Translations under genes and position numbers: made by a program
Part shown: in pieces, positions 163-25,450 of the stretch
Layout: every line of letters starts with the position of its first letter
Numbering within the stretch: position 1 is the stretch's first letter
The notes under the pieces: generated by a model
Database searches by the model: none
What the model saw: the letters and a program-made list of their open reading frames with translations, nothing else
Told to the model about the DNA's origin: nothing
Assembly (NCBI RefSeq): GCF_006345805.1
Contig: NC_043020.1
Location: 3,720,001-3,784,000, forward strand
Origin: Octopus sinensis
Taxonomy: Eukaryota
Length of the DNA stretch: 64,000 nt
Direction: 5' to 3'

Positions 163-213
<51 letters not shown>

Positions 214-430: not shown

Positions 431-649
431 ATGTGAATGTGTGTGTGTGATATATAGTTAAATTTTCACTTATGTAGTGATATGCATGTCACCTGTGTGC
501 AAAGGTAAATCAAAAATTATCTGCACTTTCGCCATAACATATCTTTATTGTTGTCACACCTCCTTCTGGCCATGCATGCTAATGGTTGGTACTCTTGTGG
601 TCATGTGATGCCAGTTTGAGCCTGGTTGTACCATTTTTCTTTCTGACCT

Positions 650-790
650 TACAGTGTGAGTATGGCCGCTCCACTAGCAATGTGCACCAAAGGAGAAGAG
701 GCAGAATTCAAAAGACAGAGTTTGGAGTGGAAACATCCTGGCTTGCCAGCAATGAAGAAATTCAAGACTCAGTCTCCTGCAACAGTTGAG
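650..790 (+). mobile_element. mariner transposase internal fragment
   Basis: EFKRQSLEWKHPGLPAMKKFKTQ resembles mariner ESKRQSMEWKHPGSP..KKFK. Confidence 0.55.
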
Positions 791-1526: not shown

Positions 1527-1561
<35 letters not shown>

Positions 1562-4500: not shown

Positions 4501-5766
4501 TAAAGCAGTTGTCCAATGTCCCTGTGAAGATAATTGCCTTATAACAATATCTACAAATGCAATCTCATCACCTAAGTCAGTAATAGATATCATTTCAGTT
4601 CCACAATGATCTCTTTAAGAGGGACTATAATATGCCCAAACATACATTCACTAACAAATAGTTAAGCAATATGATGTCACTGGTCAGAATATATATGGAG
4701 TTCAAAGTGAAGGGATACTGAATTCAAACTGCAATGGAGTATTATAACCACAGCTCCAAGCATCAGAACGTAATCGAAAAGAACATCCTCTGCAGGAACA
4801 GAATTTTCAGGACTTTTAAATTCTATAACAAATCTAATGAAAAGAAACTGTAAAACAATAAACAAACTAAATAATCTCTCATTTCCAAACTACCGGCACT
4901 GGTATCACAACTACAATTTCCATTGATTTTTGGTTGATTTTGATCTCAAATTTAATTTACCTGACTACAAGTTCATTTATTTGTAAGCTCAATGCAAAAG
5001 AAAAAAAAACTGAACAAAAAGGAAAAGAAAAGAAAACTGAAGGAAAAGAAAAGAAAACTTAAGGTGTATAAAAATTATGAACAAATTTTAAACAGTTGCA
5101 ATGGAATTGGTAGCAGGTCTAAGCTCTACTCTGAAATTGTTGATGTTTCCTTAAATATATTTACAATTAATTTAATAATTGTGTGTGTTTTGAAACGGCT
5201 AGAATGGCTCTCCCACAATTATTATTATCATTGTTCTTGTTGTTGTTGTTGGTGGTGGTGGTAACATAATTTTCCCGTGTTTTTCTTGGCCAGTTTTCTA
5301 CTTTGACTTGTAAATCTTCATTTCTATCAAACATTTCTTATCTCTTTTTGTCAGGAAAACAAAAAATTATAAAACCTTTTTTCATCTAAATGAACATTCT
5401 TGTTAATGTCAGAATGTTTTATCAAATTCTATTTAAGCAAAAATATTTTCATAATGTTTGCAAATATCTTGTGGAACATAATCACTTAAAAAAACACTGA
5501 TTTCATTTTTGACAAGGGCACAGAGCCAGTTTTTTTTTTATAGAAGAAGGGTGTAGTTAACTGAATCATTATCTCTGGTGCTTTTTCTATTATTGCGAGT
5601 GCTGTAAGCTGTAGTGATACAAGTTTAGTTCTCATTTGAGATACTTCTATTCACTTCTAGCAATTTAGCCTTTAGTATTTAAACCAAATATTTTTTGCGG
5701 CACACCATTGTGTCACAACACACAGTTTGGTAGACACTGTGTTACAGCTTAATCACTACATCAAAT

Positions 5767-6261
5767 TTGGAATTATTTCTCCATGAGTGGATGGGTCTTC
5801 TGCAGGGTGCATATTGCCAGTCAACCTGGTCCTTTTGTGTCTCCCCCATGAAATATAGCATCTACAGGTCAGCCTTCACCACATCATCCCAGCTTTTCCT
5901 TAGTCTCTCCTGTCTTCAGGTTCCATTCTCTTCAGTCCTCATTTCTTTCGTATGCAGCTGTTATCGGCCATACGCATCACCTGCCCATACCAGATGCCCA
6001 CTACACTTGATTCCTTTTAGACTCTGTGCTTTTCTGAAGTCATCTGTTCTCTGGCATTCATACACACTAACATGAACATCCTTTGGAAATATCAGCTTCA
6101 TTTCTTTCTAGTCTTTGTAAATCTTCAGGTTTCAGAGCTCCCATCTCACTCCCACACTGTATCACAGTACTAACACAAGTGTCATACAATCTACCCTTCA
6201 CACTAAAGGAAAAGACCTTTGTTGCCAGCAGCAGTAGTAACTGTCTGAACTTCCTCCAACC
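5767..6261 (-). mobile_element. RTE LINE fragment (downstream part; interrupted by Tc1)
   Basis: Translation WRKFRQLLLLLATKVFSFSVKGRLYDTCV...LERNEA matches the RTE at 54836-55222. Confidence 0.85.
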
Positions 6262-6848
6262 TTGTGGAGACAGCCAAAAGAAGCATTTGACCCTGACTGC
6301 CTTCTTCCAACTGTTAAACATGGAGGAGGATCTGTGGTGATGGGAGAGGGGGGGCTATATCTTGGAAATCCACTGGCACTATGGTTTCCCTTCATGGCAG
6401 AATTAATAGTCAAGACTATTTAAGCATTTTATCTGATCAAATCCACCCTATAGTTGTGGAACTGTTTCCAGAAGGAAGTACAATCTTTCAGGATGATAAT
6501 GTACCAATTTACTCAGCTAAAGTTGTTATTGAATGGCACAAGGAACATTCTAGTGAAGTTAAACATTTTATCTGGCCACCACAGTCCCCAGATCTCAATA
6601 TTATTGAAATGGTGCATTTTGGAAAAACAAATAAGGAGTTGATATCCTCCACCATCATCACTACAAGAACTGGAGACTGTTTTAGCTGAAGAATGGACAA
6701 AAATTCCTTTGGAAACAATTCAAACTTTGTACGAGTCCATACCTCGTACAATTCAAGCTGTAATTACAACCAAAGCTGGTCCTACTCCATATTAAAATAA
6801 AATTTGTTTGAAATTTTAAGGTGTTTCCATTATTTTGTCCAACCCCTG
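6262..6848 (+). mobile_element. Tc1-like DNA transposon, 3' half (DD36E spacing), with right TIR
   Basis: ORF 6381-6689 has FQDDN...WPPQSPDLNIIE. TIR ggtgtttccattattttgtccaacccctg at 6820-6848. Confidence 0.92.
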
Positions 6849-6849
6849 C

Positions 6850-7080
6850 CTTACTCCTAGTAAACCACTTAGGCATTTGAAAGAATCTATGTCTGGTATT
6901 CTTGTATGTATTCTTCCGGTGCATTTGTCACATAGGAAGCTTATTTCCTCTGCTTGTCTGCATGTAATTCCACAATATCACTTGTGCGTCCGTAGCTTAC
7001 ACTGAGTTCAGCATATAAAATCTACACCTACACCTTTTCTGCCTGTTGAGCAAGGCTGTTTCCCTGAAGATACCAGGATC
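6850..7080 (-). mobile_element. RTE LINE fragment (PHD-finger region; upstream part of the same copy)
   Basis: Degenerate GRKGVG..IC*TQCKLRTHK..FLCDKCTG aligns to the PHD segment at 55379-55510. Confidence 0.7.
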
Positions 7081-10056
7081 CTGATTTCTTTCCTATTTAC
7101 CAAAACCATTATTTTTTGCTAAGTTTACCTTGTGACCTCTTGATTCCTCTCCAATTCCGCTATAAATCCTGCCATGTAAACTGGGTCATCAGCGTATCTG
7201 GCTATAAAAAAACTGTCTCAAAAAGTACTTTTAAATCAATGTCCTGCATGGAAATAACAGGCATAAAAATCATAATAATGATGTGTGTGCATGTGAATGT
7301 GTGTGTGTGAAATGTTATAAATATGTGTGTGAATATGTGAGCATCTGTTATTGAATAAGGCTTTCTTTGATTTATTAAACCCAGTTTATGCTGTAAATAG
7401 AATGTATCCCACCAGGTGTAATTAAATGACAAGCCATTCTGGCAAGCATGATAGGAGGTTAAACACCTGCAAAGCTAAGTATAAATAGATTCACAAATAC
7501 TCCCAGTTGATAGCATACTTAGCATGTGGTGGAATGGCTGTGAGGGTAACATAGTTGTTGGGGGTTCAAACCTAATGCAGATATTTATTTTATTTTTATT
7601 TAGCCCAGGTCATTTATGTTCTGGCAGACCAAACATGAAAAGCGTCCAGTCTGACATTTTGTCTTTTTATATTTTTTTCAATCATTGTCCACTTCATTCT
7701 ACCTTTTTTTGTTAAGGTAATCAGTTTTGTTTGATTTTTGAAGAATGGTCAATCTTAGCACATCTTTCCTCTTTCCATTTTCCTCTTTATTTTCCAGAAG
7801 TGAGATTTCATTGTCATTTAGAAGAAAGGCTTCTTTGTCTGTTTTCATTGTTTTCTTTTTTTTTGTGTGATTTTTCTCTTCTTTTATCCTTTTATTTGTT
7901 TCAGTCATTTGACTGTGGCCATGCTGGAGCAATGCTTTGAAGGATTTTAGTTGAACAAATCGACCCCAGGACTTCATTTTTTTTTTAGCCTAGTACTTAT
8001 TCTATCAGTCCCTTTTGCCAAACTGCTATGTTACAGAAACATAAACACACCAACACCGATTATCAAACAGTGAAGGGGTGGCAGACAAACAGACATTAAG
8101 ACATACACACACACTCTTTTATTATTTTTTTTTGTTTCAGTCATTTGACTGCAACCATGCTGGAGCACCACCTTTAATCAAACAAATCGACTCCCAGGAC
8201 TTATTCTTTGTAAGCCTAGTACTTATTCTATCAGTCTCTTTTGCTGAACCACTAAGTTAAGAGGATGTAAACACGCCAACATTGGTTGTCAAACAATAGT
8301 GGAGAGGTAAACATAGACACACAAACATATACATACATATACATATATATATATATATATGTAGATAGACACTTGCCCAAGGTGCCTCATGGTGGGACTG
8401 AACTTGGATCCATGTGGTTGGGAAGCATGCTTCTTATCACACAGCCACATTTCTGTGCCTGTATTTTTTATTGCCAATTTTGGTAATTTTCATTTGTAAT
8501 TCTTCTTCCACATTGCATGATGAAAGTGTGGTACTACAAGTTGGTACTGCTACTCATAGAATTTTGGTTGGTGGTGCACTGGAAATGGATTTGTTGTTGT
8601 TGTTGCTGTTGCTCTCCATTATTTTTGTTTTTGCTCAATTTTCCCTGCTCTTCTACAAATTCGGCTCCAAAGTGTGTTTTACTTTAACAATTGTATCAAT
8701 TGTGCTTTCTACCTTGTACCATTAATTTTGTACTTTTCGTCTCAGCATCACCTTTTAGGTACACTTAGTATGCCTCTGTGGCCTTCATATATCATTAAAA
8801 CTAGTAAAATTCATTTGGATGCTCCTTAACCACAAGTCAGCTTTTGTTAACCCTGCCTTGACCACTCATCCATTCTCTGATACAAAATTGAGGACTGGCT
8901 ATGGATTGGTGCCATTTCTGGTGTGTCTTATTGTTGCTCTTGTATTTCTTTGACCCATGTATTGGAGGAGCACGAATGTATAGTCAGAGATATGTCTGAC
9001 AATTTCAGTTTGTGTTTTGGCTGCATTTTCGGTTTTGAACGTACAGAGGATAATGCCAAAGCTTTTGCCTTTTTTCAATTGAGAGAATTTCTCCTGATCT
9101 ATCCTGAAGAGCCTGTTGTGCTGTTATTTGGAATGAAGGAAAATTTCATTCACTTTCATCCATTTGTAAGCAGGGGTATCCATTTTTCTTTTTACCTTGT
9201 TTAAGCTTCGTTTCAATTACAAGGAAATGATGTTTGGTTTTATGAAATTTTCCCACCTACAACTCTTATTTTGTAACTATGCATGAAAAACAGACATTAA
9301 ATGATAATGATGAGGATGATATACAGATGACAAGCATCTGCTCAGCTTCTATAATGCAATGGTAGAATTATTCACCCCAAGTTGTCACTCTCTAGGATTG
9401 AATTGAGATCCTTCCATTTGCATTGAAAATTGGTTAACCATACGGCCATGCCTTGCTTACTTGGCTTATACTCTTGAGAAAAGCATGATGGCCACACGGT
9501 CTCAATCTTTGCGGCCTTGGGACAAACTCAGAAATTCACTGTTTTTCTCCGTATATAAAGTTACAATCCTGTTGTTGCTCTTGTTGTTGTTGCAGCTGCT
9601 GTTGTTATTGTTCTTCTTCTTGCTGCTGCTGCTGCTGTTATAGACACAAGTTATGCCTCATACTGCTCTTTGAAAAACATTCTGATTATTTGGTTTTCTG
9701 AATTGTTTTCTTTCCTCTTTTCTTCCTTTTCTTTATTCATTCCACCATTGACGAGATTTAAAAGAAAAGTACACATTTTTAATGTGTTGTCTCTTGAACC
9801 ATTCCTCAGCAGAATTTCTTTGGCAGCATTTTAAGCTATTGATAACAGCTGAACAAATGGCACCATCTTTTTAATTATTTTACTGGTTTCAGTCATTCGG
9901 TACCGCCTTCAAGAGTTGTTGCCAATTGTAAGGACCTGAGTACTTACATTAGTTTGTGATTTATTTAACGAAGGTCTGTTTCACGACCCAAATGGGGTCC
10001 CAACTGAAACAGCCTCAACAATATTAGATTTTGGACTGGTATAAATATAAGCACAG

Positions 10057-10110
<54 letters not shown>

Positions 10111-10302
10111 ATATAACCATATGTTCGCTTACATATAAAATGAAACAACCATACTTGCTCCTATAAAGTCATGAGATTAACCCAAGGCTACAGGAGAAGG
10201 CACTTGGCCAAGGAATTGTGCATTGGGCATGAAAGTAGAACCAAAGAGCTGCAAAGCATTACTACTACTACTACTACTACTACTAGTAGTAGTAGTAGTA
10301 GT

Positions 10303-10339
<37 letters not shown>

Positions 10340-10849
10340 TCCATGAATATTCCACGGAATTAATGGTAAACTTATTGAGTTATTTCTGAAAACTTTATCC
10401 AGAAAACCTGAAAGTGTAGCCTGTGTTGTGTCTGCATCAAAAGAGAGTTGCTCATCTGCTAATCATTGAAAAATGAAGAAGATTGGAATACGATAATTAC
10501 TCTATGGATTTCGTAAATACACTTTATGTACTTTCTTCTCTGTCAGGAGGTAGAAGCACTTGGATGAAGACATAAAGAAGTGCTGATCTCTAACTGTGGA
10601 GGGAACATGTGGTAGAGGTAGATCCAGGAAGACATGGGACAAGGTGGCGAGGCATGATATTTGAACTTTGGGCCTCACTGAGGCAATGACTAGTGACCGA
10701 GACCTTTGACGAAATGCTGTGCTTGAGAAGAAGACCCGTCAAGCCAAGTGAAATTGTGGTTGTGGCTGATGCTCATGTCCCATAACTGGCACTCATGCTA
10801 GTGGCACATGAGAGGCACCTTTCAAGTGTTGGGCCTCATGTCACTCTTG

Positions 10850-11625
10850 ATGGTGTCAAGCCAGCGGGTTCTTGGCCTCTTCCTCTCTTGCCACTGACCA
10901 TTCCGAGCATGATGTCCTTCTCCAGGGATTTTCTCTGCATAATATGACCAAAATATGCCAACCTATGCTTAGTGATCCCAGCTTCCCGCGACATTTTCGG
11001 CCTTATCTGCTTAAGAACTTCTCCATTGGTGAGCCTTGCTCCCCATGGAATCTGTAAAATTCTTGTCCAACACCAAAGTTCGAATGCATTAATTCTCTTC
11101 TGGTCAGCTTTCTTTAGTGTCCAGGTCTCGCATCCATATGTTGCTATTGGGAAGACAACTGCATTTGGTAGTGAGTCTGATGTCTCTACTCTTCCAGACC
11201 CTGCTCATGCTGACCATTGTCTCTCTGCCTAGTACTATCCGCCGTCTTTGTGCAGTCACCATCTCGATTTATTTTGGAGCTAAGGAAGATGAAATCATCG
11301 ACCACTTCGATCTCTTCCCTATCGATCTTGATGTTGATGTTTGTTGTGGCTGATGTTGACATGATCTTTGTTTTCTTGACATTGAGGTACAGCCCAAATT
11401 TCTCACTCTCTTCCTTGACCAGCAGGACAAGATCCTCCAGATCCTTACCACTCTCCACCAGCAGAGTTGTATCATCTGCACAGCGAAGATTATTAATATT
11501 TCTTCCTCCAATCCTAACTCCAATGCTGCTATCCTCCAGGCCTGCATTCCTCATGACCTTTTCTGCGTACATGTCGAAGGCAGCTGGTGACAGGATGCAA
11601 CCTTGCTGAGTGCCTTTTCCAATCT
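10850..11625 (-). mobile_element. RTE (BovB-like) LINE RT fragment
   Basis: ORF 11186-11572 GVRIGGRNINNLRCADDTTLLVES...LNVKKTKIM...EVVDDFIFL. The RTE C-terminal GRPRTRWLD-like segment lies near 10860-10890. Confidence 0.88.
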
Positions 11626-11874
11626 CAAATCATACATAAACACACATGCTCACAAACAGATAAAAAAGAATGCAGCTCCAATAAGGACAGAGTCAACATC
11701 CATTGACAAGGTTGTAAAAACGATGAAAATTTTGGAAGAAAAATATGAATAATAAGTAAATGGAAATCAAACCAGTGAGTGTGTTAGATAATACACACTC
11801 CCCAGCCACAACAAAATTTGCTTCAATACATGAATTCACATAAAGAATCTTGCAAACCAGAAACAAAGAGGAAG

Positions 11875-11881
11875 TACATAC

Positions 11882-11916
<35 letters not shown>

Positions 11917-11975
11917 CACACATATTTGTATATATATACACACACACACACATATACATATATATATATATATAC

Positions 11976-12022
<47 letters not shown>

Positions 12023-12085
12023 CACACTCACATATATATATACATACATACAAACACTCATGCGCACACACACACACACACTCAT
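11875..12085. repeat. (TA)n/(CA)n microsatellite block
   Basis: Direct reading. Confidence 0.9.
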
Positions 12086-12357
12086 GCATGTGTTTATGCA
12101 TCATCCTTATATGCTTTTGTATGCATATACGTGCAGTGTAATTGCAGCTGGCTCTTTGTTTTTAAAGGCAAATGCACAGAGAATGCGAAGAGAACAATCG
12201 CTTCTCTCTCTTTCTCTCCTTTTCACTCTGACCTTTTGTTTCTTCTCTGAATTAAGGGAAAAAATACACAAAGCAATAAAACGAATGCATAAAATGAAAA
12301 TAAGATAACATTTACTGCAGCCCTTCTCTTTATCTATTTATTTAGTTAGCTGTGGAG

Positions 12358-12860
12358 TTAATACATCATCCTCAACATCGTTGTTGTGGTGGTGGCGGTG
12401 GTGATGGTGATGATGGGGTGGGGGTAGTTCTCCAGTTGAAATTCAGTTTGGCAGTTCTTGCTGATATGGCAGAACAGAACAGTTTTAGCTTCTGGTAAGA
12501 ATCTGGCCATGAGGGCAACACCTCGAGGCACACTTTGGTAGAGGCACACTTTGGTAGTTGCCTTCAGTTTAGAAGGTTTCCATGTTAAAACACTTCTGTT
12601 GCTATCATCACCACTACCACCATATCCACCACCATTATTATTATTATCTTCGTCATTGTTGCTGTGATTCTTGTCATCATCGTAGTCATATTCATCACGC
12701 TCTCCTCTTCCTCTCCTACTCCTCTTCCTTTTCATCTCCACCACCACTACCGTTACCACCACCATCACCATCACCACCATTACCATCACCACCATCATCA
12801 TCAACACCATTATCATCATCATCACCATAATCATCATTACACCACCCCCTCCATCAACAT
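12358..12860. repeat. (CAT/CAC)n low-complexity block with an embedded degenerate LINE fragment
   Basis: Trinucleotide runs flank a minus-strand TKVCLYQ..-like segment at about 12440-12600. Confidence 0.7.
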
Positions 12861-13192
12861 TATGATTATTCTATGACTCCTCCGCTACTCTCGGAGCATC
12901 AAACTCTCAGATCCAACCTCAGCCACTTCCTGCCATGGCTTCCTCGTTTCTCTTTTGGTGACGCTGTCCTCTTCATTCTCAATTCTTAACTCTGCCGGAA
13001 TTTTGTTTTTATATTTTACATATTATGTATTTATGAACCAGAATAGAATATCATTGTGAAGAGAGTGAAGAGGGTGTGTCTATGGATCTTGGGTGGAATA
13101 AATACCACAAAAGATGGTTTTGTTGACACACCTACTTATTTGCAATTTCTCACCAGAACATCCACACTCACACATAACAACTTGTACCACTG

Positions 13193-13250
<58 letters not shown>

Positions 13251-13255
13251 TAAGG

Positions 13256-13710
13256 AAGCGAGCTGGCAGAAACGTTAGCACATCGAGCGAAATGTTTAGC
13301 AGTATTTCGTCTGCCATTACATTCTGAGTTCAAATTCCACCGTAGGTCGACTTTGCCTTTCATCCTTTCGGGGTCATTAAATTAAGTACCAGTTACACAC
13401 TGGGATCGATGTAATCGACTTAATCCCTTTGTCTGTCCTTGTTTGTCCCCTCTATGTTTAGCTCCTTGTGGGCAATAAAGAAAAAAAAAGGCAGTGATCT
13501 GGCAGAAACGTTAGCACACTGGGCGAAGTGCTCAGCGGTATTTCGTCTTCCGCTACGTTCTGAGTTCAAATTCTGCCAAGGTCGACTTTGCCTTTCATCC
13601 TTTCGGGGTACCAGTTACGCACTGGGGTCGATATAATCAACTTAATCCATGTGTCTGTCCTTGTTTGTCCTCTCTGTGTGTAGCCCCTTGAGGGTAGTAA
13701 AGAAACGGGT
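13256..13710 (+). mobile_element. two tandem copies of SINE-like family B (gagctggcagaaacgttagcac...ctgagttcaaattcc...)
   Basis: Many other copies, e.g. 960-1130(-), 17520-17720(-), 34990-35230(-), 36435-36670, 37085-37290(-) and 38380-38600(-). Confidence 0.8.
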
Positions 13711-13846
13711 ATAATTACAAGTTCTTGGTTTCAATGAGTTGTGTATAAACACTGGAAAGAAATACAAGAAAATGAGTTGCAATTAACTGCTATGTTTTAT
13801 TCAGCTGTTTGAAATATTGTGTGTATGTGTGCATGCATGTTTGCAT

Positions 13847-13878
<32 letters not shown>

Positions 13879-13960
13879 ACTGTAAATATGATGTTAACTA
13901 TTGCAGGCAATAATTCTTAAGAATATATGTTTTTTTTTGTTTTTTTTTGTTCTTTTGAAG

Positions 13961-14040
13961 GATAGAGGAGTTGGCAAAAGCAGCATGCTCTTCCGTATGA
14001 CACTTGAACATTTTACTGGTTCCATAGACACAAATTTAGG
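13961..14040 (+). CDS. Rab22/31-like: Rab22/31-like GTPase, first visible coding exon (P-loop and switch I)
   Basis: Acceptor ttttgaag|, 80 bp encoding DRGVGKSSMLFRMTLEHFTGSIDTNL-G(split), donor |gtaaat. Phase 2 fits the next exon. The first Gly of the P-loop must come from an unlocated upstream exon. Confidence 0.88.
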
Positions 14041-15690
14041 GTAAATAAATATTTTAACCATTTTAAAACATCTTTCACTTCATGAATTAATTGCTATGGT
14101 TTTAATGGAAAACATACCATATTTGATGGCATATAAGACATACTCTTTTGTGTGTGTGTGTGTGTGTCCCAAAAAATCTTAAAAGAATCACCCTGGGGCC
14201 TGTATGTGAAGTTGGGCCTGCTATAAGCTTTAATGCACTCAAAACTGTTTCCCTGAATATGAGCTGAAGAAATTGAAGTTTTTCCAATATGGCCATGCCT
14301 CTTTTATGCCATGAAATACCATCCATTATAAGCACCAACTTGAGACACAGTTGAGCAACAAGCTCTTTGGTGTCCGTAGCACTTGTTGCTCTTTTCTCTG
14401 TCAAAATTGGTGCTAAAACTATGTTTTTATTTCATTCTATATTTTGTATATATTTATTTTTTTAAAATTCAGTTTGTAATTTTGATTGTTGCCTTTTTAG
14501 TATTTCATTTTTGAATACATTTCAAACCCAGAACAAGATATATACGAAGCAAACTTCTTAACCACACAACCAGTGTTTAGGGCCCATGTTGGCTGGAGGA
14601 TTTGAGGAATAACAATAAGAATATGCAAGATCATATAGTAAAAAAAAAACAGTTGGAAGGTTTGGTTTTGGGTTCAACCCCACTATCTGGCACCGTGGGC
14701 AAGCATCTTCTTCTATAGCCCCAGGCCAACCAATGCCTTGAGAGTGGATTTGGTAGATGGAAACTGTGTGGAAGCTTCTTGTGTGTGTGTGTGTGTGTGT
14801 GCTTTTGTGTTTGTCACCCCCTCCTCCACTGCTTGAGAACTGGTGTTGGTTTATGTTCCTGTAACTTAGTAGTTTGGCAAAATAGACCTATGGAAATAGT
14901 ACCAGACTTTAAAAAAAGTTCTAGGGACCATTTGTTTGAATAAAACCCTTCAAGGCATTGTCCCAGCATTGTTCTGTCCAGTGACTGAAGCAAGTAAAAG
15001 ATAAAAGCCAGACATTAAATAACAATTCTTGAAGCATTCATCATCATCATCATCATCACAATGAAGATGGTCTTTGGAATCTTTGGATTCCTGCTGGAAT
15101 AGAAATTCTCCACAGAATCTTCCAAAGCATTTTTCTCACTTGATTCTGTGTCATCCCCTGCTTCCTTCAGTTCTTGTTCTTCTCTAGGTTCCAAGGCAAA
15201 AGCTTCCTTACTCAGCACTAGTATGGATAAGGAGCCAAAGCCTCAATCAATTCAAGGCTAGTGCTACTGGTAGAGTTTGGTAAGTGGGGACAAGAGTGGT
15301 GGTGGTGGTGGTGGAACAATTGATTAGGTTGATGCTCTTCTGCTTCACTAGTATTTTATTGAACCCCATTAATGTTCACCATTAAGGGTTCATCTCTAGC
15401 CAGTTCACTTTTGGCACACTTTTTGTCCTTTGCATCTTTATGGCTGAGGATATGAAAGTCATATGGTAGAAACTTTTTATGATCAATTTGTCTTATGTTG
15501 CCATGCCAACATAACTACCTTCAAACCAACGACTGATTTTATAAGGTAAAATAATTGAAAGTGTAACACTTCCCCTTCTCAAAAATAACGATTTTGAAAT
15601 TAAGGTTTTTCCTTTTTATCTCTAGTTACAAAAAAAAAAATAATAATTTGCATAATTTATATTGTGCTTTCTCTTTTTTTATTATTTCAG

Positions 15691-15772
15691 TTCTAGTTTC
15701 TTATCAAAATCAATCCAGTTAGATGGCACCACATACAAGTTCCAGATATGGGACACTCCAGGACAAGAAGGA
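15691..15772 (+). CDS. Rab22/31-like: Rab22/31-like GTPase exon (G3 motif)
   Basis: Acceptor ttatttcag|, 82 bp encoding SSFLSKSIQLDGTTYKFQIWDTPGQEG, donor |gttagt. The WDTxGQE motif is present. Confidence 0.9.
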
Positions 15773-16154
15773 GTTAGTTTTATTTTATATATTTTCTATT
15801 TTGATTCTTCTGTTTTATTTTGCAAATATTTTGTTATATGTTTCAGCATTTGTTAACAATTTCATGTAGAACTGCTTTAAAACCATTTCTGTTTAGCATC
15901 TTATGAAGGTGAAGATCTTAAAGAACTGTTTCTGAGTTTGAATGTGTCTTATAGAGACAGAAGGCTTTTAGGGAAAGCCCTTTCTTTCGCTCATAAACAC
16001 AGCCAACCTCACAAACTCCATTGTATAACCACCAATAACTACCACAGATTGTTTTGCTTCTTTTTTTTTTACTTGTTTTGTTTTGTTTTGTTTTTTCCTT
16101 CTACTCTTTCATAAGCATCTTTCCAATTATTTACACTGTTTATATCATTCTATC

Positions 16155-16455
16155 GGAGGCACAACGGCCGGCCCAGTGGTTAGGACAGCGGACTCGTGGT
16201 CGTAGGATCGCGGTTTCGATTCCCAGACCGGGCGTTGTGTGTGTTTATTGAGTGAAAACACCTAAAAAGCTCCACGAGGCTCCGGCAGCGGGTGGTGGCG
16301 ATCCCTGCTGTACTCTTTCTCTCACTCTTTCTTCTGTTGGCCTGCTCGCTTAGCCAGTGGGGTGGCGTCATTTGAAGGCTAAAACAATGCGAAGCGCATT
16401 GTGACCAGCGATGTGTAGCAACATCTGATGGTCTGGTCGGTCACGTGATCACTTG
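16155..16455 (+). mobile_element. tRNA-derived SINE with 13-bp target-site duplication
   Basis: A-box-like GGCCCAGTGG and B-box GGTTTCGATTCCC. TSD ATATCATTCTATC at 16142-16154 and 16456-16468. Confidence 0.85.
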
Positions 16456-18189
16456 ATATCATTCTATCAATATCATAAATATTTGAGAACTTTGCAGAGT
16501 TTTGAAAAATAGCTTTATTTTTCATTATTATACTATCATCATCATCATCATCATCCTAATGATTTAACGTCTGTTGTCCATGCTGGCATGGGCTGGATGG
16601 TTTGACCAGGCCTGGCAAGCTGGAAGGCTACACCAGACTCCAGTCTGATTTGGTATGGTTTCAATGGCTGGATGCCCTTCCTGATGCCAACCACTCTGAG
16701 AGTGTAATGGATAGCTTTACATGTCACTGGCACAGGTGCCATTTGTGTGACACCAGTATCTGCCGTGACTGTGATCTTAATTGGTCTGATGGGTCTTCTT
16801 CTCAAGCATGACATAATGCCATGGTCTCGGTCATTCGTCATTGCCTTTGTGAGGCCCAACCCTTGAAAGGAGCTTTTCACATGCCACCGGCATTGGCCAC
16901 TTTGCTTGACAGGTCAGTTCAAGGACAGAATATTGCCAAAGGTCTAGGACACTAGTCATTGCCTGTGTGAGGCTCAAAGTTCAAAGATCATGCTTCACTA
17001 CATCGCCCCATGTCTTCCAGCACAGGTGAGGTCAGCATGGGAAAAGTAAACGTTACTATGACGATGACGATGTGCATACACATAACCCCCCCCCCACATC
17101 CTCACACGTTTGTGTTTTGCTATAAATATGCTCAGGGTTTCAGGTTGTCTGTCAGTAAAGCAGTGTGAGTTTTATGGCCCTCTTAAATTCAGAACTTATC
17201 TTTTATGTTTCTTTAGCTTCTACTTCTTTTCCCTCTCTTTCACTCACTTTCTCCCTCCCTTATCTCCTCTGTCTCCTCCCCTCTCCGGTGAATCAACATA
17301 CAATAATAAATTTCAAAGTGCTTCAGACTCCCCCCCTCCCGTATATTACAATTATTGCAGCTAGCAGCGCCCTCTCTATAAATATCTCTCAACTGACAGA
17401 GTGGCCAGTTTGGCATTAAACAGCTCCTTATTTACTATTTCTAATGTGGCTTCTACATCAAGAGCTGCTGCTACTACTACTACTACTACTAAATAATAAT
17501 AATAATAATGATAATAATGGTTTCAACTTTTGGCACAATGCCAGTAAGTTCAGGGGAGGGAGTAAGTTGATTACATTGACCCCCAACAGTCAACTGGTAC
17601 TTATTTTATTGACCTCAGAAGGATGAAAGGCAAAGTCGACCTTGCCAGAATTTGAACTCAGAATGTAAAGACCGCTAAGCATGTTACCTGGCATGCTAAC
17701 GATTCTGCCAGCTTGCTGCCTTTATGGTAATAAGAATAACAATAATAAAAACTATTCTTTCTAACTTTTGGCACAGAGCCTGAAATTTTATGGGAGAGGA
17801 TAATCGATTACATCAATCCCAGAGTTCAACAGGTACAAAAGGATGAAAAGCAAAGTCAATTTCGGTGGAATTTGGACCCAGAATGCAAAGCCATTTTGAA
17901 TATGGCAAAGAAATTTCATCGACGATGTTTTGCTCTTTCGTTGGATTGTAACCCTTTCGGTTAAGCACTTTTATTGACCAGAATTATTGCAGAATATTGT
18001 TGGTAATCCCAACATAATTGACCCTGCTCTAGTTTCTCTTTCTTTCTTCCTGTTGTTTCACCCTGTCAGACTTTGTAACATTTATTCCTTTCATCCTTGC
18101 CCTCTGCTCATGTTTGGGATCAGTTGCTCTTTTCTCTCATACAGTTTCACTCAGGCCATCTGCTTCATTTGATCACTTCATCATAATGG

Positions 18190-18400
18190 AGTTTTTGGGC
18201 CCAGCAGCCAGGGCAGCAGTGACTCCTCCAGGCACTTGATGTAGGCCTCTGTGTTGAGTCTGAGGCCATGTGGAAGATGAATGGAGGTATAATGTCACAT
18301 CACTAGTGATCCCTCCAAACATCATGATGTTGACTGGATGTGTGATATTTTTATCACTCTTGGTATATGTTTTGGGGACACAGCAAGCCAATGGTTGTTC
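18190..18400 (-). mobile_element. maT/DD37D-like transposase fragment
   Basis: HPVNIMMFGGITSD, then a frameshift to GLRLNTEAYIKCLEESLLPW. Confidence 0.6.
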
Positions 18401-18688
18401 TGTGTGTTTACCATCTGTTTGTATTGGAGATTCCAGTGCAAATGCCAAGCAGTACAGCATGTTGATTCCAAATTTCTGGCAGAGTGAATTGCATCATGGT
18501 ACTGTTTTTCTCACAGACAGTACCCAACTGACCCTACTAAACTGTGTAGATGACAAAATCAAAAACAATGTGCATGCGTGAAATTAAACTTTTTAATTTG
18601 GTAACAATTTACATATCACACCATGTGTGTATATATATATATATATATATTGTTTATTACCTCTTCCATATGTTTCATTCCACCACAG

Positions 18689-18760
18689 CTTCTTACCAAC
18701 TATTCCAGCCAAATGCACGGTGCCTCTGCTATTGTTATTGTTTACGATGTTACAAATAAG
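18689..18760 (+). CDS. Rab22/31-like: Rab22/31-like GTPase exon (switch II, VYDVT)
   Basis: Acceptor ccacag|, 72 bp encoding LLTNYSSQMHGASAIVIVYDVTNK, donor |gtaaag. Spacing from GQE to GA..IVYD matches canonical Rabs. Confidence 0.88.
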
Positions 18761-19105
18761 GTAAAGTTCAAAGCAAAAGACTTCTCTTCGTTCCTTTCAT
18801 TTTCCTTATTTTGACTTTGTACTTGATGTTTTTTTTGTTTTTTTTCATTTAGTTATTTAGATATTAGACATTTTGGAGATGCACTTGGCAGGCAAACGAC
18901 TTAATCTGCAGGTTGAAACTGAAACAATTCCATCCTGAAAGACATATATTAGCCTTTCAAAAACAGACAAAAAAAAGTTTTTGCTTTAAGAATATTCCGA
19001 GTGCTGTGGTGTTCAGTGCTTCTTAGCTCAGATAATTTCCGAGTTGAATTCTGAAATTGCAAATGTCATATTTCGTTTTTGTGTTGTCGGACAGCAGCCT
19101 TTTAT

Positions 19106-19555
19106 CTTCTATGATGTACATGGGGGCTATGGAATTGGTTCCTGAAATGAAGAAGGAACAAGGCTACTGGAGTTCTGTCATGCAGATAACATCTTGATCT
19201 GCAACACCAACTTCAGGAAGCCAGCTAGCCACCTGATAACCTATCAATACAAAGACCCTCCCTGGTGAAGAATGTACCCCACAGCATAGACTAGCCACTA
19301 GTGACTTCAGACTCCAGGCCAGAAGGATGCCAAGAAGCAGACCAATCTGGAAAAGAAAGATTTGGAAGCTTAAGAACCCTTCACATGGTCAGAGTTTTAA
19401 GGAGATCCTAATTGAGAAATTTGATGAGAGGGAGGAGGAGCTACAAACTTGTGACATCAAAGACAACTGAGAATTCCTGCAAGACAGCTTGCTGAGTGCC
19501 ACAGACCAAATCTGGGGCTGGGGCAAAGTCCCTTCCTGGCCTAGAGTAATGTATC
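19106..19555 (+). mobile_element. RTE LINE APE-endonuclease/linker fragment
   Basis: HGGYGIGS*NEEGTRLLEFCHADNILICNTNFRKPASHLITYQ, followed by degenerate linker. Confidence 0.75.
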
Positions 19556-19578
19556 GGCGATTTTGGACTTTTTCTATA

Positions 19579-19610
19579 TTTCTGATGAAGAGCTCCACTC
19601 GAAATTTGAA
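19579..19610 (+). ncRNA. degenerate minimal hammerhead motif
   Basis: UUU-CUGAUGA-A-GAG-CUCCA-CUC-GAAAU. Stem III and the cleavage site have decayed. Confidence 0.4.
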
Positions 19611-20126
19611 GTCCTCTTTCTTTCCTTTCCTGAGCATCCAATAACACTGTACTTATTCCACATCCTCATGATGAAAACAACACAAAACATAATTAAATTC
19701 CTTTACTGGATAAGGGAGGCCAGCCTTATTTAAGCCCATTTTTTCATTCTAGAGGTATTTGCATGGATAATCTCAGTTAATCAGCATTTTTCAACTCAAT
19801 ATATTATATGTGAGATCCTACAGGGTCTACATTTAATATGCAGACCCGACTTTTCCCCCACACTTTACATCACTCTGTTCTTCATCTCCTTGCATAAAAT
19901 TGTTCCTTTGGGGTTCATAGCCTTGAAAGCTGCATGACAACTTCACTAGTGCTAGTGTCCCCAAAAACAAAAGCACCTGCTACATGCTGTAAAGTGGATG
20001 GCTGTGGGAAGGGCATCTAACTGAAGAAACCATTCCAAAGCAGACACTGGGGCATAATGCAGTCTTTGGGTCCATAAGATCCTGCCAAACCAGGCATTCC
20101 ATGCCAACATGGATCATGGACATTAA

Positions 20127-20163
<37 letters not shown>

Positions 20164-20644
20164 CCCATCCTCTTTTCTATGAAGCCAACACTAAGTGTAT
20201 TGCCATTTCTATAAAACCTTATGCCATGGTTGGAAGCTACTGCAAATATGTTAATGGCATCAGTGATTATTAGAGCAGTATGGATTGATGGAAATTTTGT
20301 GGAAGCCTGCCATATTTATTTTTTTGTAAGCACAGATATATTTCTGTGGTTATGGAGTTTGCTTTGCAACTGTTGCAGGTTTGATTCCACTGATACTTGA
20401 GTAATAGCCCCAGGTTGATGAAAGCCTTGTGAGATCAAATCTACTGGAAGAATTATTCATGTTCTTGTATTGTAGATTTGAATCCGTTATCTGGTTTAAC
20501 ACTTCTGTCCAGCCCTTTGGTGCATTTAGGAGAGTCCATTTAGCACTAGTGCCTGACCCTTTACTGTATTTAGAAACTTATATATTCAATTAGTTACTTA
20601 TTTAACTTTCTAATGACTTAATTTTTTTCCTCTTTTTTTCGCAG

Positions 20645-20771
20645 AATTCTTTTGCAAATGCTACAACCAGCTGGTGGAAGAAGGTCCAGAAACATGGCGG
20701 TGCCAATTTAGTAGTGGCACTGGTTGGCAATAAATGTGATCTAGAAGCTAGTAGGAAGGTCAAAACAACAG
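20645..20771 (+). CDS. Rab22/31-like: Rab22/31-like GTPase exon (G4 NKCD)
   Basis: Long polypyrimidine tract then gcag|, 127 bp encoding NSFANATTSWWKKVQKHGGANLVVALVGNKCDLEASRKVKTT plus 1 nt, donor |gtatga. Confidence 0.9.
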
Positions 20772-20784
20772 GTATGAACTCTTC

Positions 20785-20816
<32 letters not shown>

Positions 20817-20975
20817 ATAATAAATATTAGGGAATAAATCCAAATTTACAGGGAAAAATCAGATTTAGGATTGAATCCAATTTTATAATAAAATATTATA
20901 TTATATTAAATTAGGGACAAAACCACTATTATGCAAATCAAACAAAGAAAGACTTAAGTCAATACATAAAATAAT

Positions 20976-21164
20976 TTATATATATATGTATATATATATA
21001 TATATGGATGTATATATATATACATATACACATGTATGTATATAGATGTATATATATATATATATGGATGTATATATATATACATATACACATGTATGTA
21101 TATAGATGTATATATATATATATATATGGATGTATATATATACATATACACATGTATGTATATA

Positions 21165-21223
<59 letters not shown>

Positions 21224-21336
21224 GTATGTATATAGATGTATATGTATACATGTATATGTATAGCTGTATATGTACACATGTATATGTATAGATGTATTTC
21301 TATAGATATAGATGTGTATGTATACATGTATGTGTA

Positions 21337-21370
<34 letters not shown>

Positions 21371-21460
21371 TGTACATGTAATATGTACACATATATATTC
21401 ACATATATACATGCATACATATATACACACATATACACACACCCCCACACACACATATAC
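20976..21460. repeat. compound (TA)n microsatellite with three roughly 60-bp higher-order units
   Basis: The sequence lines starting at 21001 and 21061 are identical, and the line at 21121 is nearly so. Confidence 0.9.
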
Positions 21461-23075
21461 ATAGGTGCAGGTGTGGCTGTGTGGTAACAAACTTCGTTCC
21501 AAAACACATGGTCCTGAGTTCAGTCCCACTGTGTGGCAACTTGGCATGTGTCCTCTGCTATAGCCTCAGACCAACCAAAGCCTTGTCAGTGGATTTTGTA
21601 GACAGAAACTGAAAGAAATCAATTGTATATATATATGTATGTATATATGTAAGTCTATGTGTGTTTCTCCCTCATCAATGCTTCACAACTGGTGTTCGTT
21701 TATTTACATCCCCATAACTTACTAGTTTCACAAGAACAAACTAATAGAATAAGTACCAGGCTTATCAACATAAAAAAAGCACTAGGCTGTGTCTCATATT
21801 TTTGTTTGCTCACTCAGTTGTATCTATCTATTCATCTTTGTATGTGTGTGTGTGTGTCTATATCTATCTGTCTGTCTGTCTGTCTGTCTATATATATATA
21901 TATATATATATAACACCCTAATGGGGGCCTTAACTCACAAATTTTAGTCATTTCTTTTATGATCCAAAACTAAGTCAAAAGTATTGAATGGATCTTTATG
22001 AAATTTGGAAATTATATTCTTTGCATAAGGGCCATAACCCCCATGACAATTCATATATTTTTGCTGTTGATCTGGCAGAGATGCCCTTCCTAACACCAAC
22101 CACTCCAAGAGTGTAGTAGGTGCTTTTACGTGCCACCGGCATGAGGGCCAGTTAAGTGGTACTGGTAACGGCCATGCTCAAATGGTATTTTTTTATGTGC
22201 CACCTGCACAGGAGCCAGTGCAGCAGCACTGGTAACGACCTCGCACGAATGTTTTTTCACATGCCACTGGCACAAGTGCAAGTAGGGCGACGCTGATAAC
22301 GATCACGCTTGAATGGTGCTTCATATGTGCCACTGGCATGGAAGCCAGTCGGCTGCTCTGGCAACGATCATGCTCGGATGGTGCTCTTAGCGCTCCACTA
22401 GCACAGATGCCAGTCATCAACCAAGAAGGGTAAGGAAAGTAAATCTACCTGCATTGAGAGCACAACTTCATCTCAGGTGTCATTCCCAGATGGTTTGGTA
22501 GCTTTTTTCTGACAGTTGTGTTAGTAATAACCTCACAACTTGGGCCATTGTGTTGTGCTACTAATCTAGGAACATGACTCTGATTAGTTTACTTTGTCTT
22601 TTAGTCTTACTCTGCACTTCACTGGAGCCAACGAGGAAATCGCCTCAGAGCTGATCAACATAATAGAAACAATAGCCATAGTTTTCTCAGTTTACACCTT
22701 ACTGTGTTAGTATAGAAGGACACAGTGAGTAGTGTTACTCAAGGTACACTATGCCCAAGAAATGTAAGATGGTAATGCTTTATGTCATTTTATTCCCTGC
22801 AACTGACAATGAGCACCAACAGTAAAGTATAAGACATTTTGGTGCTGCCTATTTGCCATCGGTGATCTTATGTGACATCAGACATTTAATGTATCTCTTA
22901 TTCTCTCCCTTTCCCCATCTCTCTCTCTCCTGTTTATATTTGTATGTGAATTGAAAGACCCAGTCTTCAACAACGAGAACTAATTGTAATTAGTTAATGA
23001 TTGGAAAGATAAATAAGAAATCATTTAATTAATTTTTTTTATGTAACCATATCTGTTTTTTTTTTTTTTCTTTAG

Positions 23076-23168
23076 ATGGAAAGTCGTTTGCTGACAGCAA
23101 TGGGGCAGTGTTTGTCGAAACAAGTGCATTGACTTCCACAAATTTAGTTTTCTTACTTCAGGAAATTG
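23076..23168 (+). CDS. Rab22/31-like: Rab22/31-like GTPase exon (G5 ETSA)
   Basis: Poly-T tract then ttag|, 93 bp encoding (D)GKSFADSNGAVFVETSALTSTNLVFLLQEI plus 1 nt, donor |gtgaga. Phase 1 at both ends is consistent with its neighbours. Confidence 0.9.
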
Positions 23169-23479
23169 GTGAGAAATATTTTTGTTTCTGTTCGTTTTAT
23201 GGAATTCAGAGCTTTACGTTTCGTTACCAACTAACAGACAGGTTTCTTAGTTGGATCCAACCTAATGGCACCTCAGTTCAAAACCATTATCTGACCCTTA
23301 TGTGTCACTCTGTTACCTACATTCAGACCAAGTGACTGGTCTTAGGGTTTCCCTTCCACAGGTCTCAGAGGCTCTGCAAATGGTTTCAGCTGCTGCTTTT
23401 CTCCTCTGACTTTTTGACAGAATTCTGTCGTGATGACAATGTTAAACTTAGAATAACAATAACCCTAATCAGATTTTAC

Positions 23480-24660
23480 TTTTGCTGTTACCAACTCCTT
23501 ATTACATACATACATGCATAAGGATCTCTAAATCTCTGCCCATATCATACTGGCAGAGATTTAGAGATGACCCTAATGAAGCCTTTAATGAGAAGGAGAA
23601 AGAGATGGAGATATACAACACAGAGGACAACTGGGGGTTCTTACAGAACAATCTGCGGAGGTGATAACCAAATCTGTGGTTGAAGCAAAGCATCTGCCAA
23701 ACCTCTTCTTCTTTTTTAGCTATAATGAATCTAGCAAAAGAATTGGAAAAACATCCTGGCTATCACCCACCACCATCCACCACTATCACCCCACTGCACA
23801 TGCCATTAAAAAGCAATCAAATAAACAAAACACCAAAACAATTAAAACCATCCACTCTCGCCTCAACTTTTTGCTTAATGCCCAAGGCATCAGCCCTTCC
23901 ACCAATACTCAAAAATGGAAGATAAAGTTCCTGGAGGACTGGGTCGATGCCCATCCAAACCACATCCCTTTCTTCGTCCTCACTGAAACCCATCTTAGTA
24001 ACCTCCATTTGGAAGCCGAGGTGAAAGTTAAAAAATTTCAAAGCCATTCGTGCTGATCATGCTGGCGGAAGAAAGGGTGGGACTGCCATTTATGTTCATG
24101 ATTCATTCTCAACAGAAGCTTTGAACATATTTTCCAATGGATACTGCGAAGCAGTCGCTGCATTCAGTCAAACCAACAACTTAACAGTAGTTGGGCTCTA
24201 CAGACCACCCCAAACGCCCCTACCATGCTTCAAGGAATGCCTCAACAACATAAAGTGTTTCATCCAGCAGTGTCAACCTGACAACATTTTAATGATGGGG
24301 GACTTCAACCTCCCCAGGGTTGACTGGTCTACAAACAGTCTACTGCCAGGTTCTTCACTCTCAACCCTTGACAGGGAGGCAGTGGAATTGCTTCTTGACT
24401 TCATGGATGATTTCTTCCTGTCCCAACTGGTGCTCGAACCAACAAGATGTCACAAAAACGTCTTAGACTTAATTTTCAGCAATCACACTGATACTATCCA
24501 CAATATTGCAGTGGAGAAAACTCTGCCCTCCGACCATGACATGGTTCTCTGTGATCTGAGATTTCACCGGCCAAAATGCAAAACAAACGTTATCCCTCCT
24601 GTTCATCCATTTGACACTATGGATTTCCACAACGCAAACTGGGAAGCGAGCAGTAATGAT
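23480..24660 (+). mobile_element. CR1/Jockey-like LINE APE endonuclease remnant in a Rab intron
   Basis: ORFs 23661-24056 and 24121-24825 contain NAQG, LTETH, KGGTAIY, YRPP, GDFN, PTR..NVLDL and SDH. The element is truncated before the RT. Confidence 0.88.
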
Positions 24661-25226
24661 CATGCACAAGTCAATTGGTCCTGTATATGTAAATACCTCT
24701 CGCTAAATATTTATTGCTTTTTATACATTATTGTATCTGGTATGACCTTGTCTATTCTTTTCCGTGGCAGATACATTATAGTGAACAATTTAATAAAGAA
24801 GTGGAGTCACAAATGCTATGATTAACATGACATTCACCATAGATATTGCTTCAGTTAAGATTTGTTTCCAAATATGCATCAACTTTAACAACAACTATAA
24901 AATAAATACTGTTTTAAGATTTCCTGAACATATAAAACTGCAGTGTGTCCTGTTTCAATTCTTATGAAGGTTTATGGAATATGCAAATACAAATCTTCTA
25001 AATTAGAATTTTAAGAGACAGTGAGGATTATGCTGAGGGTCAGGAAGAGTGATTATGAAAGGAAAGGAAAGGTGTCTGAATTTTTAGCTAAAGATGTTTT
25101 TTTTTAACCATCTTTATACTAAATTGTAAGACAGGATAAAGCACCCTGGGCTTTATGGCTACCTTCACTGGCCATGATTCATTTCATGATTAGGAGTTAT
25201 TGTGTAAAATGTAAGTTTTCAAGTAC

Positions 25227-25271
<45 letters not shown>

Positions 25272-25331
25272 ATACACACACACACTGATACACCCATATA
25301 TATGCATGTGTTTTCCTCTTTATCTTCTCAG

Positions 25332-25450
25332 CTCAAAAGTTACCCCCAACTTCATGTGAAGAAGTAGAAGCTAGCAATGACTCTTCTTCAAAGGATGTCT
25401 CTGACTCAACCAGCAAAACATCAAAGAAAAGTGGTTGCAATCTATCCTGA
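25332..25450 (+). CDS. Rab22/31-like: Rab22/31-like GTPase last coding exon (hypervariable tail, CaaX CNLS, stop)
   Basis: Acceptor cttctcag|, phase 1, encodes (A)QKLPPTSCEEVEASNDSSSKDVSDSTSKTSKKSGCNLS-TGA. This resembles a Ser/Lys-rich Rab tail with a terminal Cys motif. Confidence 0.8.

Follow-up and report, generated by a model that had tools for sequence, protein, structure and literature searches.

A 64,000-nt stretch of the Octopus sinensis genome (the window, 100% identical to CM016882.1:3720001-3784000 of assembly GCA_006345805.1) contains six of the seven coding exons of a divergent, intron-bearing Rab22-type gene, for which we use the label DIV. DIV is an intact, conserved gene of cephalopods whose product has lost residues that are invariant in canonical Rab22 and Rab31 proteins, and it co-exists in octopods with a canonical Rab22A that has no introns in its G domain. 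The reading of these findings that we favor, and which taken as a whole we regard as reasonably likely, is that a retrogene kept the ancestral Rab22 role while the parental locus, DIV, became a G protein with a farnesyl anchor and an atypical switch. DIV is already in RefSeq under generic and inconsistent names and is otherwise undescribed: a literature search on the DIV protein accessions and on Rab22 in cephalopods found no paper that mentions it.

A prior inspection of the window from its letters alone (the sequence-only reading) had described six exons with canonical splice sites that join in frame to encode 190 amino acids, and both the coordinates and the AG/GT boundaries proved correct, with each 5' AG preceded by a polypyrimidine tract. 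Joined, these exons give 573 nt in a single frame (DRGVGKSS...KKSGCNLS*), which corresponds to residues 13-202 of a 202-residue protein common to O. sinensis (XP_029650793.1) and O. vulgaris (CAI9740428.1). The automatic names of these two entries are mutually inconsistent, the former being "Rab-5A" [RefSeq "Rab-5A(-like)"] and the latter "Rab-22A isoform X1." What the earlier model lacked was coding exon 1 (36 nt, ATG...MLVRNVKLVFFG), which genomic locus mapping placed on the forward strand 24,583 nt 5' of exon 2 and about 10.66 kb before window position 1 (L009 10001-10036; the window matches L009 20660-56109 at 100% identity). Since exon 1 lies outside the window, the model built from the window has no start codon. 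No exon-1-like peptide was found inside the window by six-frame peptide matching or sensitive tblastn, and no additional Rab exons were detected there. DIV is thus a gene of seven coding exons of 36/80/82/72/127/93/119 nt that encode 202 amino acids.

All of the exons within the window are on the forward strand, and the 3' part of intron 1 (24,583 nt as a whole) occupies positions 1..13960. Coding exon 2 (80 nt, 13961..14040; L009 34620-34699) encodes residues D13-G39, with the codon for G39 split, and carries the P-loop (GDRGVGKS), helix alpha1 and switch I, in which Asn37 replaces the universal G2 Thr. Coding exon 3 (82 nt, 15691..15772, residues G39-G66) provides strands beta2-beta3 and a G3 motif, WDTPGQE, with a change of Ala to Pro within DxxG. 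Coding exon 4 (72 nt, 18689..18760, residues L67-K90) encodes switch II and helix alpha2, where LLTNYSSQMHG is present in place of the canonical RALAPMYYRG, along with strand beta4 (IVIVYDVT). Coding exon 5 (127 nt, 20645..20771, residue N91 to the first base of D133) provides alpha3, beta5 and the G4 motif GNKCDL, and coding exon 6 (93 nt, 23076..23168, D133 to the first base of A164) contributes alpha4, beta6, the G5 motif ETSAL and the beginning of alpha5. The remainder, A164-S202, is encoded by coding exon 7 (119 nt including the TGA, 25332..25450) and consists of a disordered tail with a basic stretch (KTSKKSG) and a CaaX box, CNLS, which has one Cys instead of the Rab CC. The motifs that the sequence-only reading had quoted (GVGKS, DTNLG, WDTPGQE, GLLTNYSSQMHG, NKCD, and ETSA) are all present as given. 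The orthologue is annotated over 129 kb in O. bimaculoides (GCA_001194135.2), compared to 36 kb in both O. sinensis and O. vulgaris. A further O. bimaculoides isoform, X2 (182 residues), begins at Met21 in exon 2, implying an alternative 5' exon or promoter.

Two types of search were used for the distribution of DIV: 5.8 billion protein clusters were screened through a word index, with both the protein and a profile of its orthologues as query, and 1.84 billion representatives were screened exhaustively with HMMER. Together these returned only three DIV clusters, with scores of 399-437 bits, all of which are cephalopod: one from Octopus species (98-100% identity), one from Argonauta hians (84%) and one, P0003, from a third lineage (70%) that was assembled from 19 sequencing runs. 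P0003 is encoded by a contiguous open reading frame (ORF) in 19 contigs (19 runs), which measure about 2.2-2.7 kb, have about 99.6% mutual identity and are best explained as assembled mRNA. The next single-domain matches scored about 158-179 bits and were ordinary Rab22, Rab31, Rab5, ARA6, and Rab1 proteins, in which the G2 and G3 motifs are canonical. The top multi-domain matches of the exhaustive search were rejected as family members, as they are tandem Rab fusions with canonical motifs. Based on these searches the DIV family appears to be restricted to cephalopods, as far as public data go, in agreement with the earlier expectation of a lineage-restricted gene. The possibility that DIV belongs to a widespread and already known Rab subfamily was rejected, given that these searches returned DIV-type matches from the three cephalopod clusters only.

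We are close to certain that DIV is a functional gene. Its seven-exon chain is far beyond chance and is intact in the genomic DNA of O. sinensis, O. vulgaris, and A. hians, with Argonauta exon 4 being 75 nt in length owing to a one-codon insertion in switch II. The coding sequences of O. sinensis and O. vulgaris differ by four synonymous and no nonsynonymous changes, with the flanking and intronic DNA of the locus being about 95-98% identical. For O. sinensis versus Argonauta, pN amounts to 0.103 and pS, which is saturated, to 0.75; the proportion of differences at four-fold sites is 0.59 and dN/d4 is about 0.095, which is similar to the value of about 0.09 for canonical Rab22A in the same pair. 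Switch I and switch II are constrained no less than the remaining protein. These values show that DIV is under purifying selection, with a dN/dS of about 0.1. That DIV might be an artefact of annotation or a pseudogene, either in decay or not expressed, could be argued from the location of exon 1 outside the window and from the loss of universal motifs; however, this explanation is effectively refuted by the intact seven-exon ORFs with canonical splice sites in three genomes, the low dN/dS, the existence of protein models for DIV in O. bimaculoides as well, and the contiguous ORF in the contigs of the third lineage, and the opinion of the sequence-only reading that the gene is no pseudogene is upheld. 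Across the Octopus-Argonauta split, four-fold-site divergence is 0.59 in DIV (L009, L011) versus 0.27 in the canonical copy (L014, L012), and at the DIV locus the silent as well as the replacement rate is about three times higher. The GC content at third codon positions of DIV is 0.52 in Argonauta versus 0.37 in Octopus.

The gene structure of DIV bears on its descent. The coding exons of Rab22 are 36/80/82/72/124/93/116 nt in Lottia and 36/80/82/72/124/93/110 nt in Patella, and all six DIV introns are identical in position and phase to those of both mollusc genes. Fish RAB22A, with exons of 36/80/82/72/107/110/101 nt, has five of the six introns in common with DIV, and the exon sizes of 80/82/72 nt that the sequence-only reading had given for the vertebrate genes are therefore right for fish RAB22A as well as for both mollusc genes. 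By comparison, Hypsibius Rab5B has no exact intron position in common with DIV, and Pyrus RHN1 has two, both in the C-terminal half. The protein has sequence traits that are Rab22-like, namely a short N-terminus (M-x-x-R-x-V-K), GD.GVGKS, Lys45, and GNKCDL. On the basis of the intron structure and these traits we place DIV in Rab22, not Rab5, despite its RefSeq name, in keeping with the Rab22/31-like label of the sequence-only reading, and we consider it very probable that DIV descends from Rab22.

A different assignment, that DIV is an old separate Rab subfamily (Rab5-like, for example) that has been mistaken for Rab22, has some support beyond the RefSeq name. The scores to the best solved relatives in the PDB are nearly tied (Rab31 128.5 bits, Rab5A 124.3 bits, and Rab22A 124.3 bits, all at about 40-45% identity), Rab5, ARA6, Rab22, and Rab31 all occur among the best single-domain matches of the exhaustive search, and in a neighbor-joining tree (300 bootstraps) the DIV clade fell outside Rab22 altogether and adjacent to the Rab5 outgroups, with 98% support. 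The tree counts against descent from Rab22 and would allow an older origin, although its placement of DIV is probably due to long-branch attraction. We judge the old-subfamily assignment to be very improbable, based on the complete match of intron positions and phases to mollusc Rab22 and their difference from the two Rab5-type genes examined, the Rab22-like residues listed above and the lack of any non-cephalopod member among the 1.84 billion representatives. As the DIV protein fails at G2, RabF3/F4, and the CC motif, we prefer to describe it as a "Rab22-derived atypical GTPase" rather than as "a Rab22."

The DIV protein belongs to the Ras family of Pfam (PF00071, E = 8e-42). Where DIV has DTNLG and GLLTNYSSQMHG, the aligned PDB proteins have NPTIG and RFRALAPMYYRG, and these canonical strings, which had been used for comparison in the sequence-only reading, are indeed those of Rab22A and Rab31. 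The nucleotide-binding motifs G1 (GDRGVGKS), G4 (NKCD), and G5 (ETSA) are present and invariant in all cephalopod DIV orthologues, and DIV keeps the P-loop, including the Mg-binding Ser, along with Asp60 and the catalytic Gln64. The G2 Thr of switch I (Ras Thr35) is replaced by Asn37 in Octopus, Argonauta, and the third lineage. G3 is DTPGQ in octopods, where the D, G, and Q are kept and Ala is changed to Pro, and DTARQ in the third lineage, where the Gly is lost. The G2 Thr and the Ala and Gly of DxxG are 100% conserved in 51 canonical Rab22/31 proteins and in the Rab5 outgroups.

The motifs that distinguish Rabs have fared unequally. RabF1 to RabF5 are reportedly defined, following Pereira-Leal and Seabra, as IGxxF, KxQIW, RF/YR.., YYRGA, and YDxT, respectively. 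RabF1, RabF2, and RabF5 are present in DIV as LGSSF (Ile changed to Leu/Phe), KFQIW, and VYDVT, respectively, whereas RabF3 and RabF4 are absent in octopod DIV, which has GLLTNYSSQMHGA and RLSTTNYSSQLHGA instead. The corresponding region of the third lineage is RFRCNYSNFIHGA, in which just the RFR part is kept. The Tyr of the hydrophobic triad is Gln in octopod DIV. The di-cysteine prenylation motif of Rabs (CC, CXC, or CCXn) is also absent, there being one Cys in CNLS, CHLS, or CHIS, while the second C-terminal Cys column is 100% conserved in the canonical Rab22/31 set. The tail, KKS[GN]C[NH][LI]S, is conserved across all three lineages and forms a CaaX box of the H-Ras CVLS type.

To place these changes in context we used a conservation set of the 51 canonical Rab22/31 proteins, which come from sponges, placozoans, lophotrochozoans, arthropods, and deuterostomes and define 80 near-invariant columns (conservation of at least 90%). 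At 33 of these columns DIV departs from the set, compared to seven for the canonical cephalopod copy and 12 for Rab5-type outgroups from a plant, an oomycete and a tardigrade. The deviations are common to all three DIV lineages at 27 of the 33 columns, and at 18 of these 27 the new residue is identical. The changes, which cluster in switch I, DxxG, switch II/alpha2, alpha1, alpha3, and the tail, run from beta1 (C9V, L10F) and alpha1 (V22L/I, F25M/V, V26T) through switch I (T37N, I38L/F, A40S/T, M43L) and DxxG (A62P in octopods, G63R in P0003) to switch II and alpha2, where LAPMYYR has become NYS(S/N)(Q/F)xH (with the following residue, LAPMYYRG to NYSxxxHG), and continue in beta4 (A81I), in alpha3 (K98T, E103K, L104V) and at A117V, A134G, Y137F, A153S, and F160L, and the second C-terminal Cys is lost. 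Such a burst of replacements at positions that are otherwise immovable, with the new state then conserved, argues for a change of function and not for decay.

Despite these replacements DIV is predicted to fold as a normal G domain. An AlphaFold2 model has the usual order of strands and helices, with a mean pLDDT of 82, a core above 90 and a pTM of 0.77, and its confidence is low only in switch I/II (pLDDT about 61) and in the tail (<50). The TM-score of the model is 0.93 to Rab5a, Rab22, and Rab31.

Thr35 and Gly60 (Ras numbering) anchor the gamma-phosphate through main-chain NH groups, and their release drives the universal switch. As judged from the residues present, the balance tips slightly toward the switch of DIV being atypical. 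If DIV lost the switch-I Thr before the split of the three lineages, and DxxG was then altered independently in two of them, by Pro beside the Gly in octopods and by Arg for the Gly in the third lineage, this would be the pattern expected if gamma-phosphate sensing had already become dispensable. DIV would then no longer use the canonical Thr/Gly "loaded-spring" switch nor the RabF3/F4 surface, its nucleotide cycle would be slow or one-state, and it would bind a new set of partners. The sequence-only reading had likewise suggested either new partners or an unusual cycling of nucleotides. The competing explanation is that DIV, with the same or a similar origin, has a conventional switch in which Asn37 substitutes for Thr, Pro62 is tolerated and lineage-specific GEFs, GAPs, and effectors have co-evolved with the new switch surfaces, which would make DIV a Rab that has evolved fast and gained new partners. 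G1, G4, G5, the P-loop Ser, and Gln64 are all kept, the lineages share conservation of the new switch residues, on which purifying selection acts, and the fold is predicted to be intact, all of which would suit a working switch. Set against this are the complete conservation of the G2 Thr and the DxxG Ala/Gly in the 51 canonical proteins and the Rab5 outgroups, the loss of the Thr in all DIV lineages together with two independent changes of DxxG (Pro62 and Arg63), and the indel in switch II of Argonauta. On these grounds we regard a conventional switch as unlikely, though it is the alternative to which we give most weight.

The origin of DIV has to be considered together with the canonical Rab22A of octopods (STIGASF, WDTAGQEKYHALAPMYFRG, ...SCC...), which is present alongside DIV in O. 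bimaculoides, O. sinensis/vulgaris, and A. hians. In both genomes examined its whole G domain is in one exon of 597-609 nt (L014 1001-1609 in O. bimaculoides and L012 1001-1597 in A. hians, both outside the window). There is an optional splice to a 39-nt 3' exon located 11-22 kb downstream; without this splice the reading frame ends at a stop five codons on, and a Logan protein equals the read-through form. The canonical gene is unlinked to DIV, being on a different chromosome or scaffold. In addition, about 380 nt 5' of its ATG is 74% conserved between O. bimaculoides and A. hians. Two further canonical Rab22A proteins of cephalopod type, P0169 and P0175 (Logan), are 76-78% identical to the octopod copy and have an insertion of 5-7 residues in the beta2-beta3 loop. 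Many mollusc Rab22 proteins, including the canonical cephalopod copy, extend 6-35 residues past the CC prenylation motif, an uncommon trait in Rabs that may stem from the use of alternative last exons.

The location of the G domain in a single exon makes canonical Rab22A look like a retrogene, as all of the parental coding introns are gone and the location is unlinked. As DIV keeps the ancestral introns while the canonical copy is intronless, a single retroposition is the simplest history, and we consider it probable that DIV is the parental locus and canonical Rab22A the retrogene. The "lineage-specific paralogue" of the sequence-only reading therefore stands insofar as a canonical Rab22A co-exists with DIV, but its direction is probably reversed, as it is DIV that retains the ancestral introns. 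An opposite history, implied by the sequence-only reading, in which DIV is a DNA-level, intron-preserving duplicate and the canonical gene is the original locus, its introns having been lost or the gene having been replaced by a retrocopy, is compatible with the existence of two unlinked copies, and the sequence data do not orient the duplication. We consider this history rather improbable, as it needs more events (duplication and the simultaneous loss of six introns, or duplication, retroposition, and loss) versus one retroposition, and no intron-bearing canonical Rab22 in octopods was present among the best matches. The surroundings of the genes did not add to this. No neighbor gene was found within 10 kb of the Patella Rab22 locus, and tblastx of the flanks of Lottia Rab22, which has a PH/IRS-domain gene tail-to-tail downstream, had no match in the window. 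The 5' flanks and untranslated regions of DIV, the canonical copy and the third-lineage contigs have no similarity to one another, which is uninformative on retroposition.

Retroposition from DIV as the parent offers the following history. The mRNA of Rab22 would have been retroposed in the cephalopod stem, and the retrogene copy would have retained the ancestral endosomal Rab22 role. The intron-bearing parent, released from that role, may then have acquired a new function, as a membrane-anchored protein that binds guanine nucleotides, held by a farnesyl group and independent of REP and GDI. A CaaX box in which X is Ser (such as CVLS of H-Ras) is the motif of farnesyltransferase, and RabF3/F4 and the Tyr of the hydrophobic triad contribute to the binding of REP/GDI and effectors. 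Judging from the tail, the chance that DIV is farnesylated through its CaaX box seems a little better than even.

Several points weigh against this history or parts of it. No clear poly(A) or target-site duplication is present in the 900 nt 3' of canonical Rab22A, and intron content is the sole basis for the assignment of the ancestral locus, an assignment that we nonetheless hold to be probable. A sister relationship between DIV and the canonical cephalopod copy did not emerge from a test of shared rare residues. Across the Octopus-Argonauta split, silent sites have diverged about 2-3.5 times as much in DIV as in the canonical copy, and what look like transcripts of DIV come from the P0003 contigs alone and not from Octopus. 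With respect to the mechanism, Asn37 may yet be able to bind Mg2+, and GEFs and GAPs that co-evolved with DIV could preserve a working switch. As for the tail, RabGGTase still acts on certain genuine Rabs that end in CXXX.

Of the known systems, Rab22A and Rab31 are the closest to DIV, and Rab22A proteins are its best-scoring named relatives. DIV has the exon-intron architecture of mollusc Rab22 and shares the N-terminus, GD.GVGKS, GNKCDL, ETSA, and the fold, but it is only about 40-46% identical to Rab22A/Rab31 and differs in its Asn at G2, its altered DxxG, the replacement of RabF3/F4 (RFRALAPMYYRG in the canonical proteins) and a CaaX box rather than CC. The proposed history resembles cases of retrogene replacement, such as amphioxus SYCP1 (PMC5803294), in that the ancestral-type protein is encoded by a copy with one exon and no longer by the multi-exon parent. 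It differs in that the parent is lost in the classical case, whereas the DIV parent would have survived, remodelled and under purifying selection, if the retroposition that we infer took place.

In its switch residues DIV resembles the atypical or "broken-switch" small GTPases, such as Rab24, Rnd/RhoH, and MRAS (PMC11733253), and the pseudoGTPases (classes as used in PMC12490416), as the G-domain fold is kept and canonical GTP/GDP switch residues are changed. By analogy with these proteins DIV is likely to work through binding rather than classical cycling. DIV differs from Rab24 in keeping the catalytic Gln, which Rab24 does not have, and in losing the G2 Thr. A nucleotide-free (class i) pseudoGTPase is unlikely because G1, G4, and G5 are kept. 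As in H-Ras, the Cys of DIV is four residues from the end (C-N-L-S, C-H-L-S, or C-H-I-S) and is preceded by a Lys-rich stretch; a single Cys at this position is also a feature of the CXXX-tailed Rabs, Rab8, Rab13, Rab18, and Rab23. All 51 of the canonical Rab22/31 proteins have CC, and none of them has a tail like that of DIV.

DIV is not a novel class of system, and RefSeq already holds the gene under generic names. If the proposed history is true, DIV would be a clean experiment of nature on the fate of genes after retroduplication and on the mechanism of small GTPases. The retrocopy would have inherited the ancestral function and the intron-rich parent, instead of being lost, would have been rebuilt and kept under purifying selection since at least the Octopus-Argonauta split and the earlier split of the third lineage. 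The nucleotide pocket would have been kept while both "loaded spring" anchors were affected, and the prenylation and REP/GDI logic of Rabs would have been exchanged for a CaaX of Ras type. For the biochemistry of Rabs, DIV would then be a test case, provided by evolution, of how much of the switch can be dispensed with, and it would represent a cephalopod-specific trafficking or signaling component among the innovations of coleoids.

Codon 37 (window 14031-14033) is AAT, and AAT or AAC across the lineages, and a second-base change of A to G gives Ser (AGU/AGC). In codon 63 of the third lineage, AGA (Arg), a single A to G change gives GGA (Gly), the canonical DxxG residue. It is conceivable, but in our opinion extremely improbable, that the lost switch residues are restored by the A-to-I RNA editing that is so extensive in coleoids, so that switching would be gated by ADAR in a tissue-wise manner, with Ser at position 37 being a partial functional stand-in for the G2 Thr. 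In the third-lineage contigs the bases at these positions are unedited, which makes high-level editing in those samples unlikely.

The remaining features of the window are repeats and remnants of mobile elements; tRNA and Rfam scans of the window had no match. Intron 6 contains a LINE-type endonuclease ORF remnant on the forward strand at 24121..24825 (Exo_endo_phos_2 of Pfam, E = 2.7e-13), which is outside the gene product and is accompanied by a further forward-strand stretch at 23661-24056. Two reverse-transcriptase ORF fragments (RVT_1) are on the reverse strand: a smaller one at 11186-11572, a retrotransposon remnant in intron 1, and one at 54836-56262, a retrotransposon remnant 3' of DIV in which RVT_1 is followed by a PHD/C1-like zinc finger. 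Interspersed SINE-like repeats occur at 13252-13705, 17557-17669, 34997-35228, 35611-35742, 36435-36666, 38379-38599, 53015-53124, and other positions; their families are about 100-230 bp in length with up to 11 copies in the window, several of them in DIV introns. Lastly, intron 5 contains, just 3' of exon 5, an AT-rich tandem array (20977-21425) of period 60 and about 6.8 copies with a nested TA/TG microsatellite.

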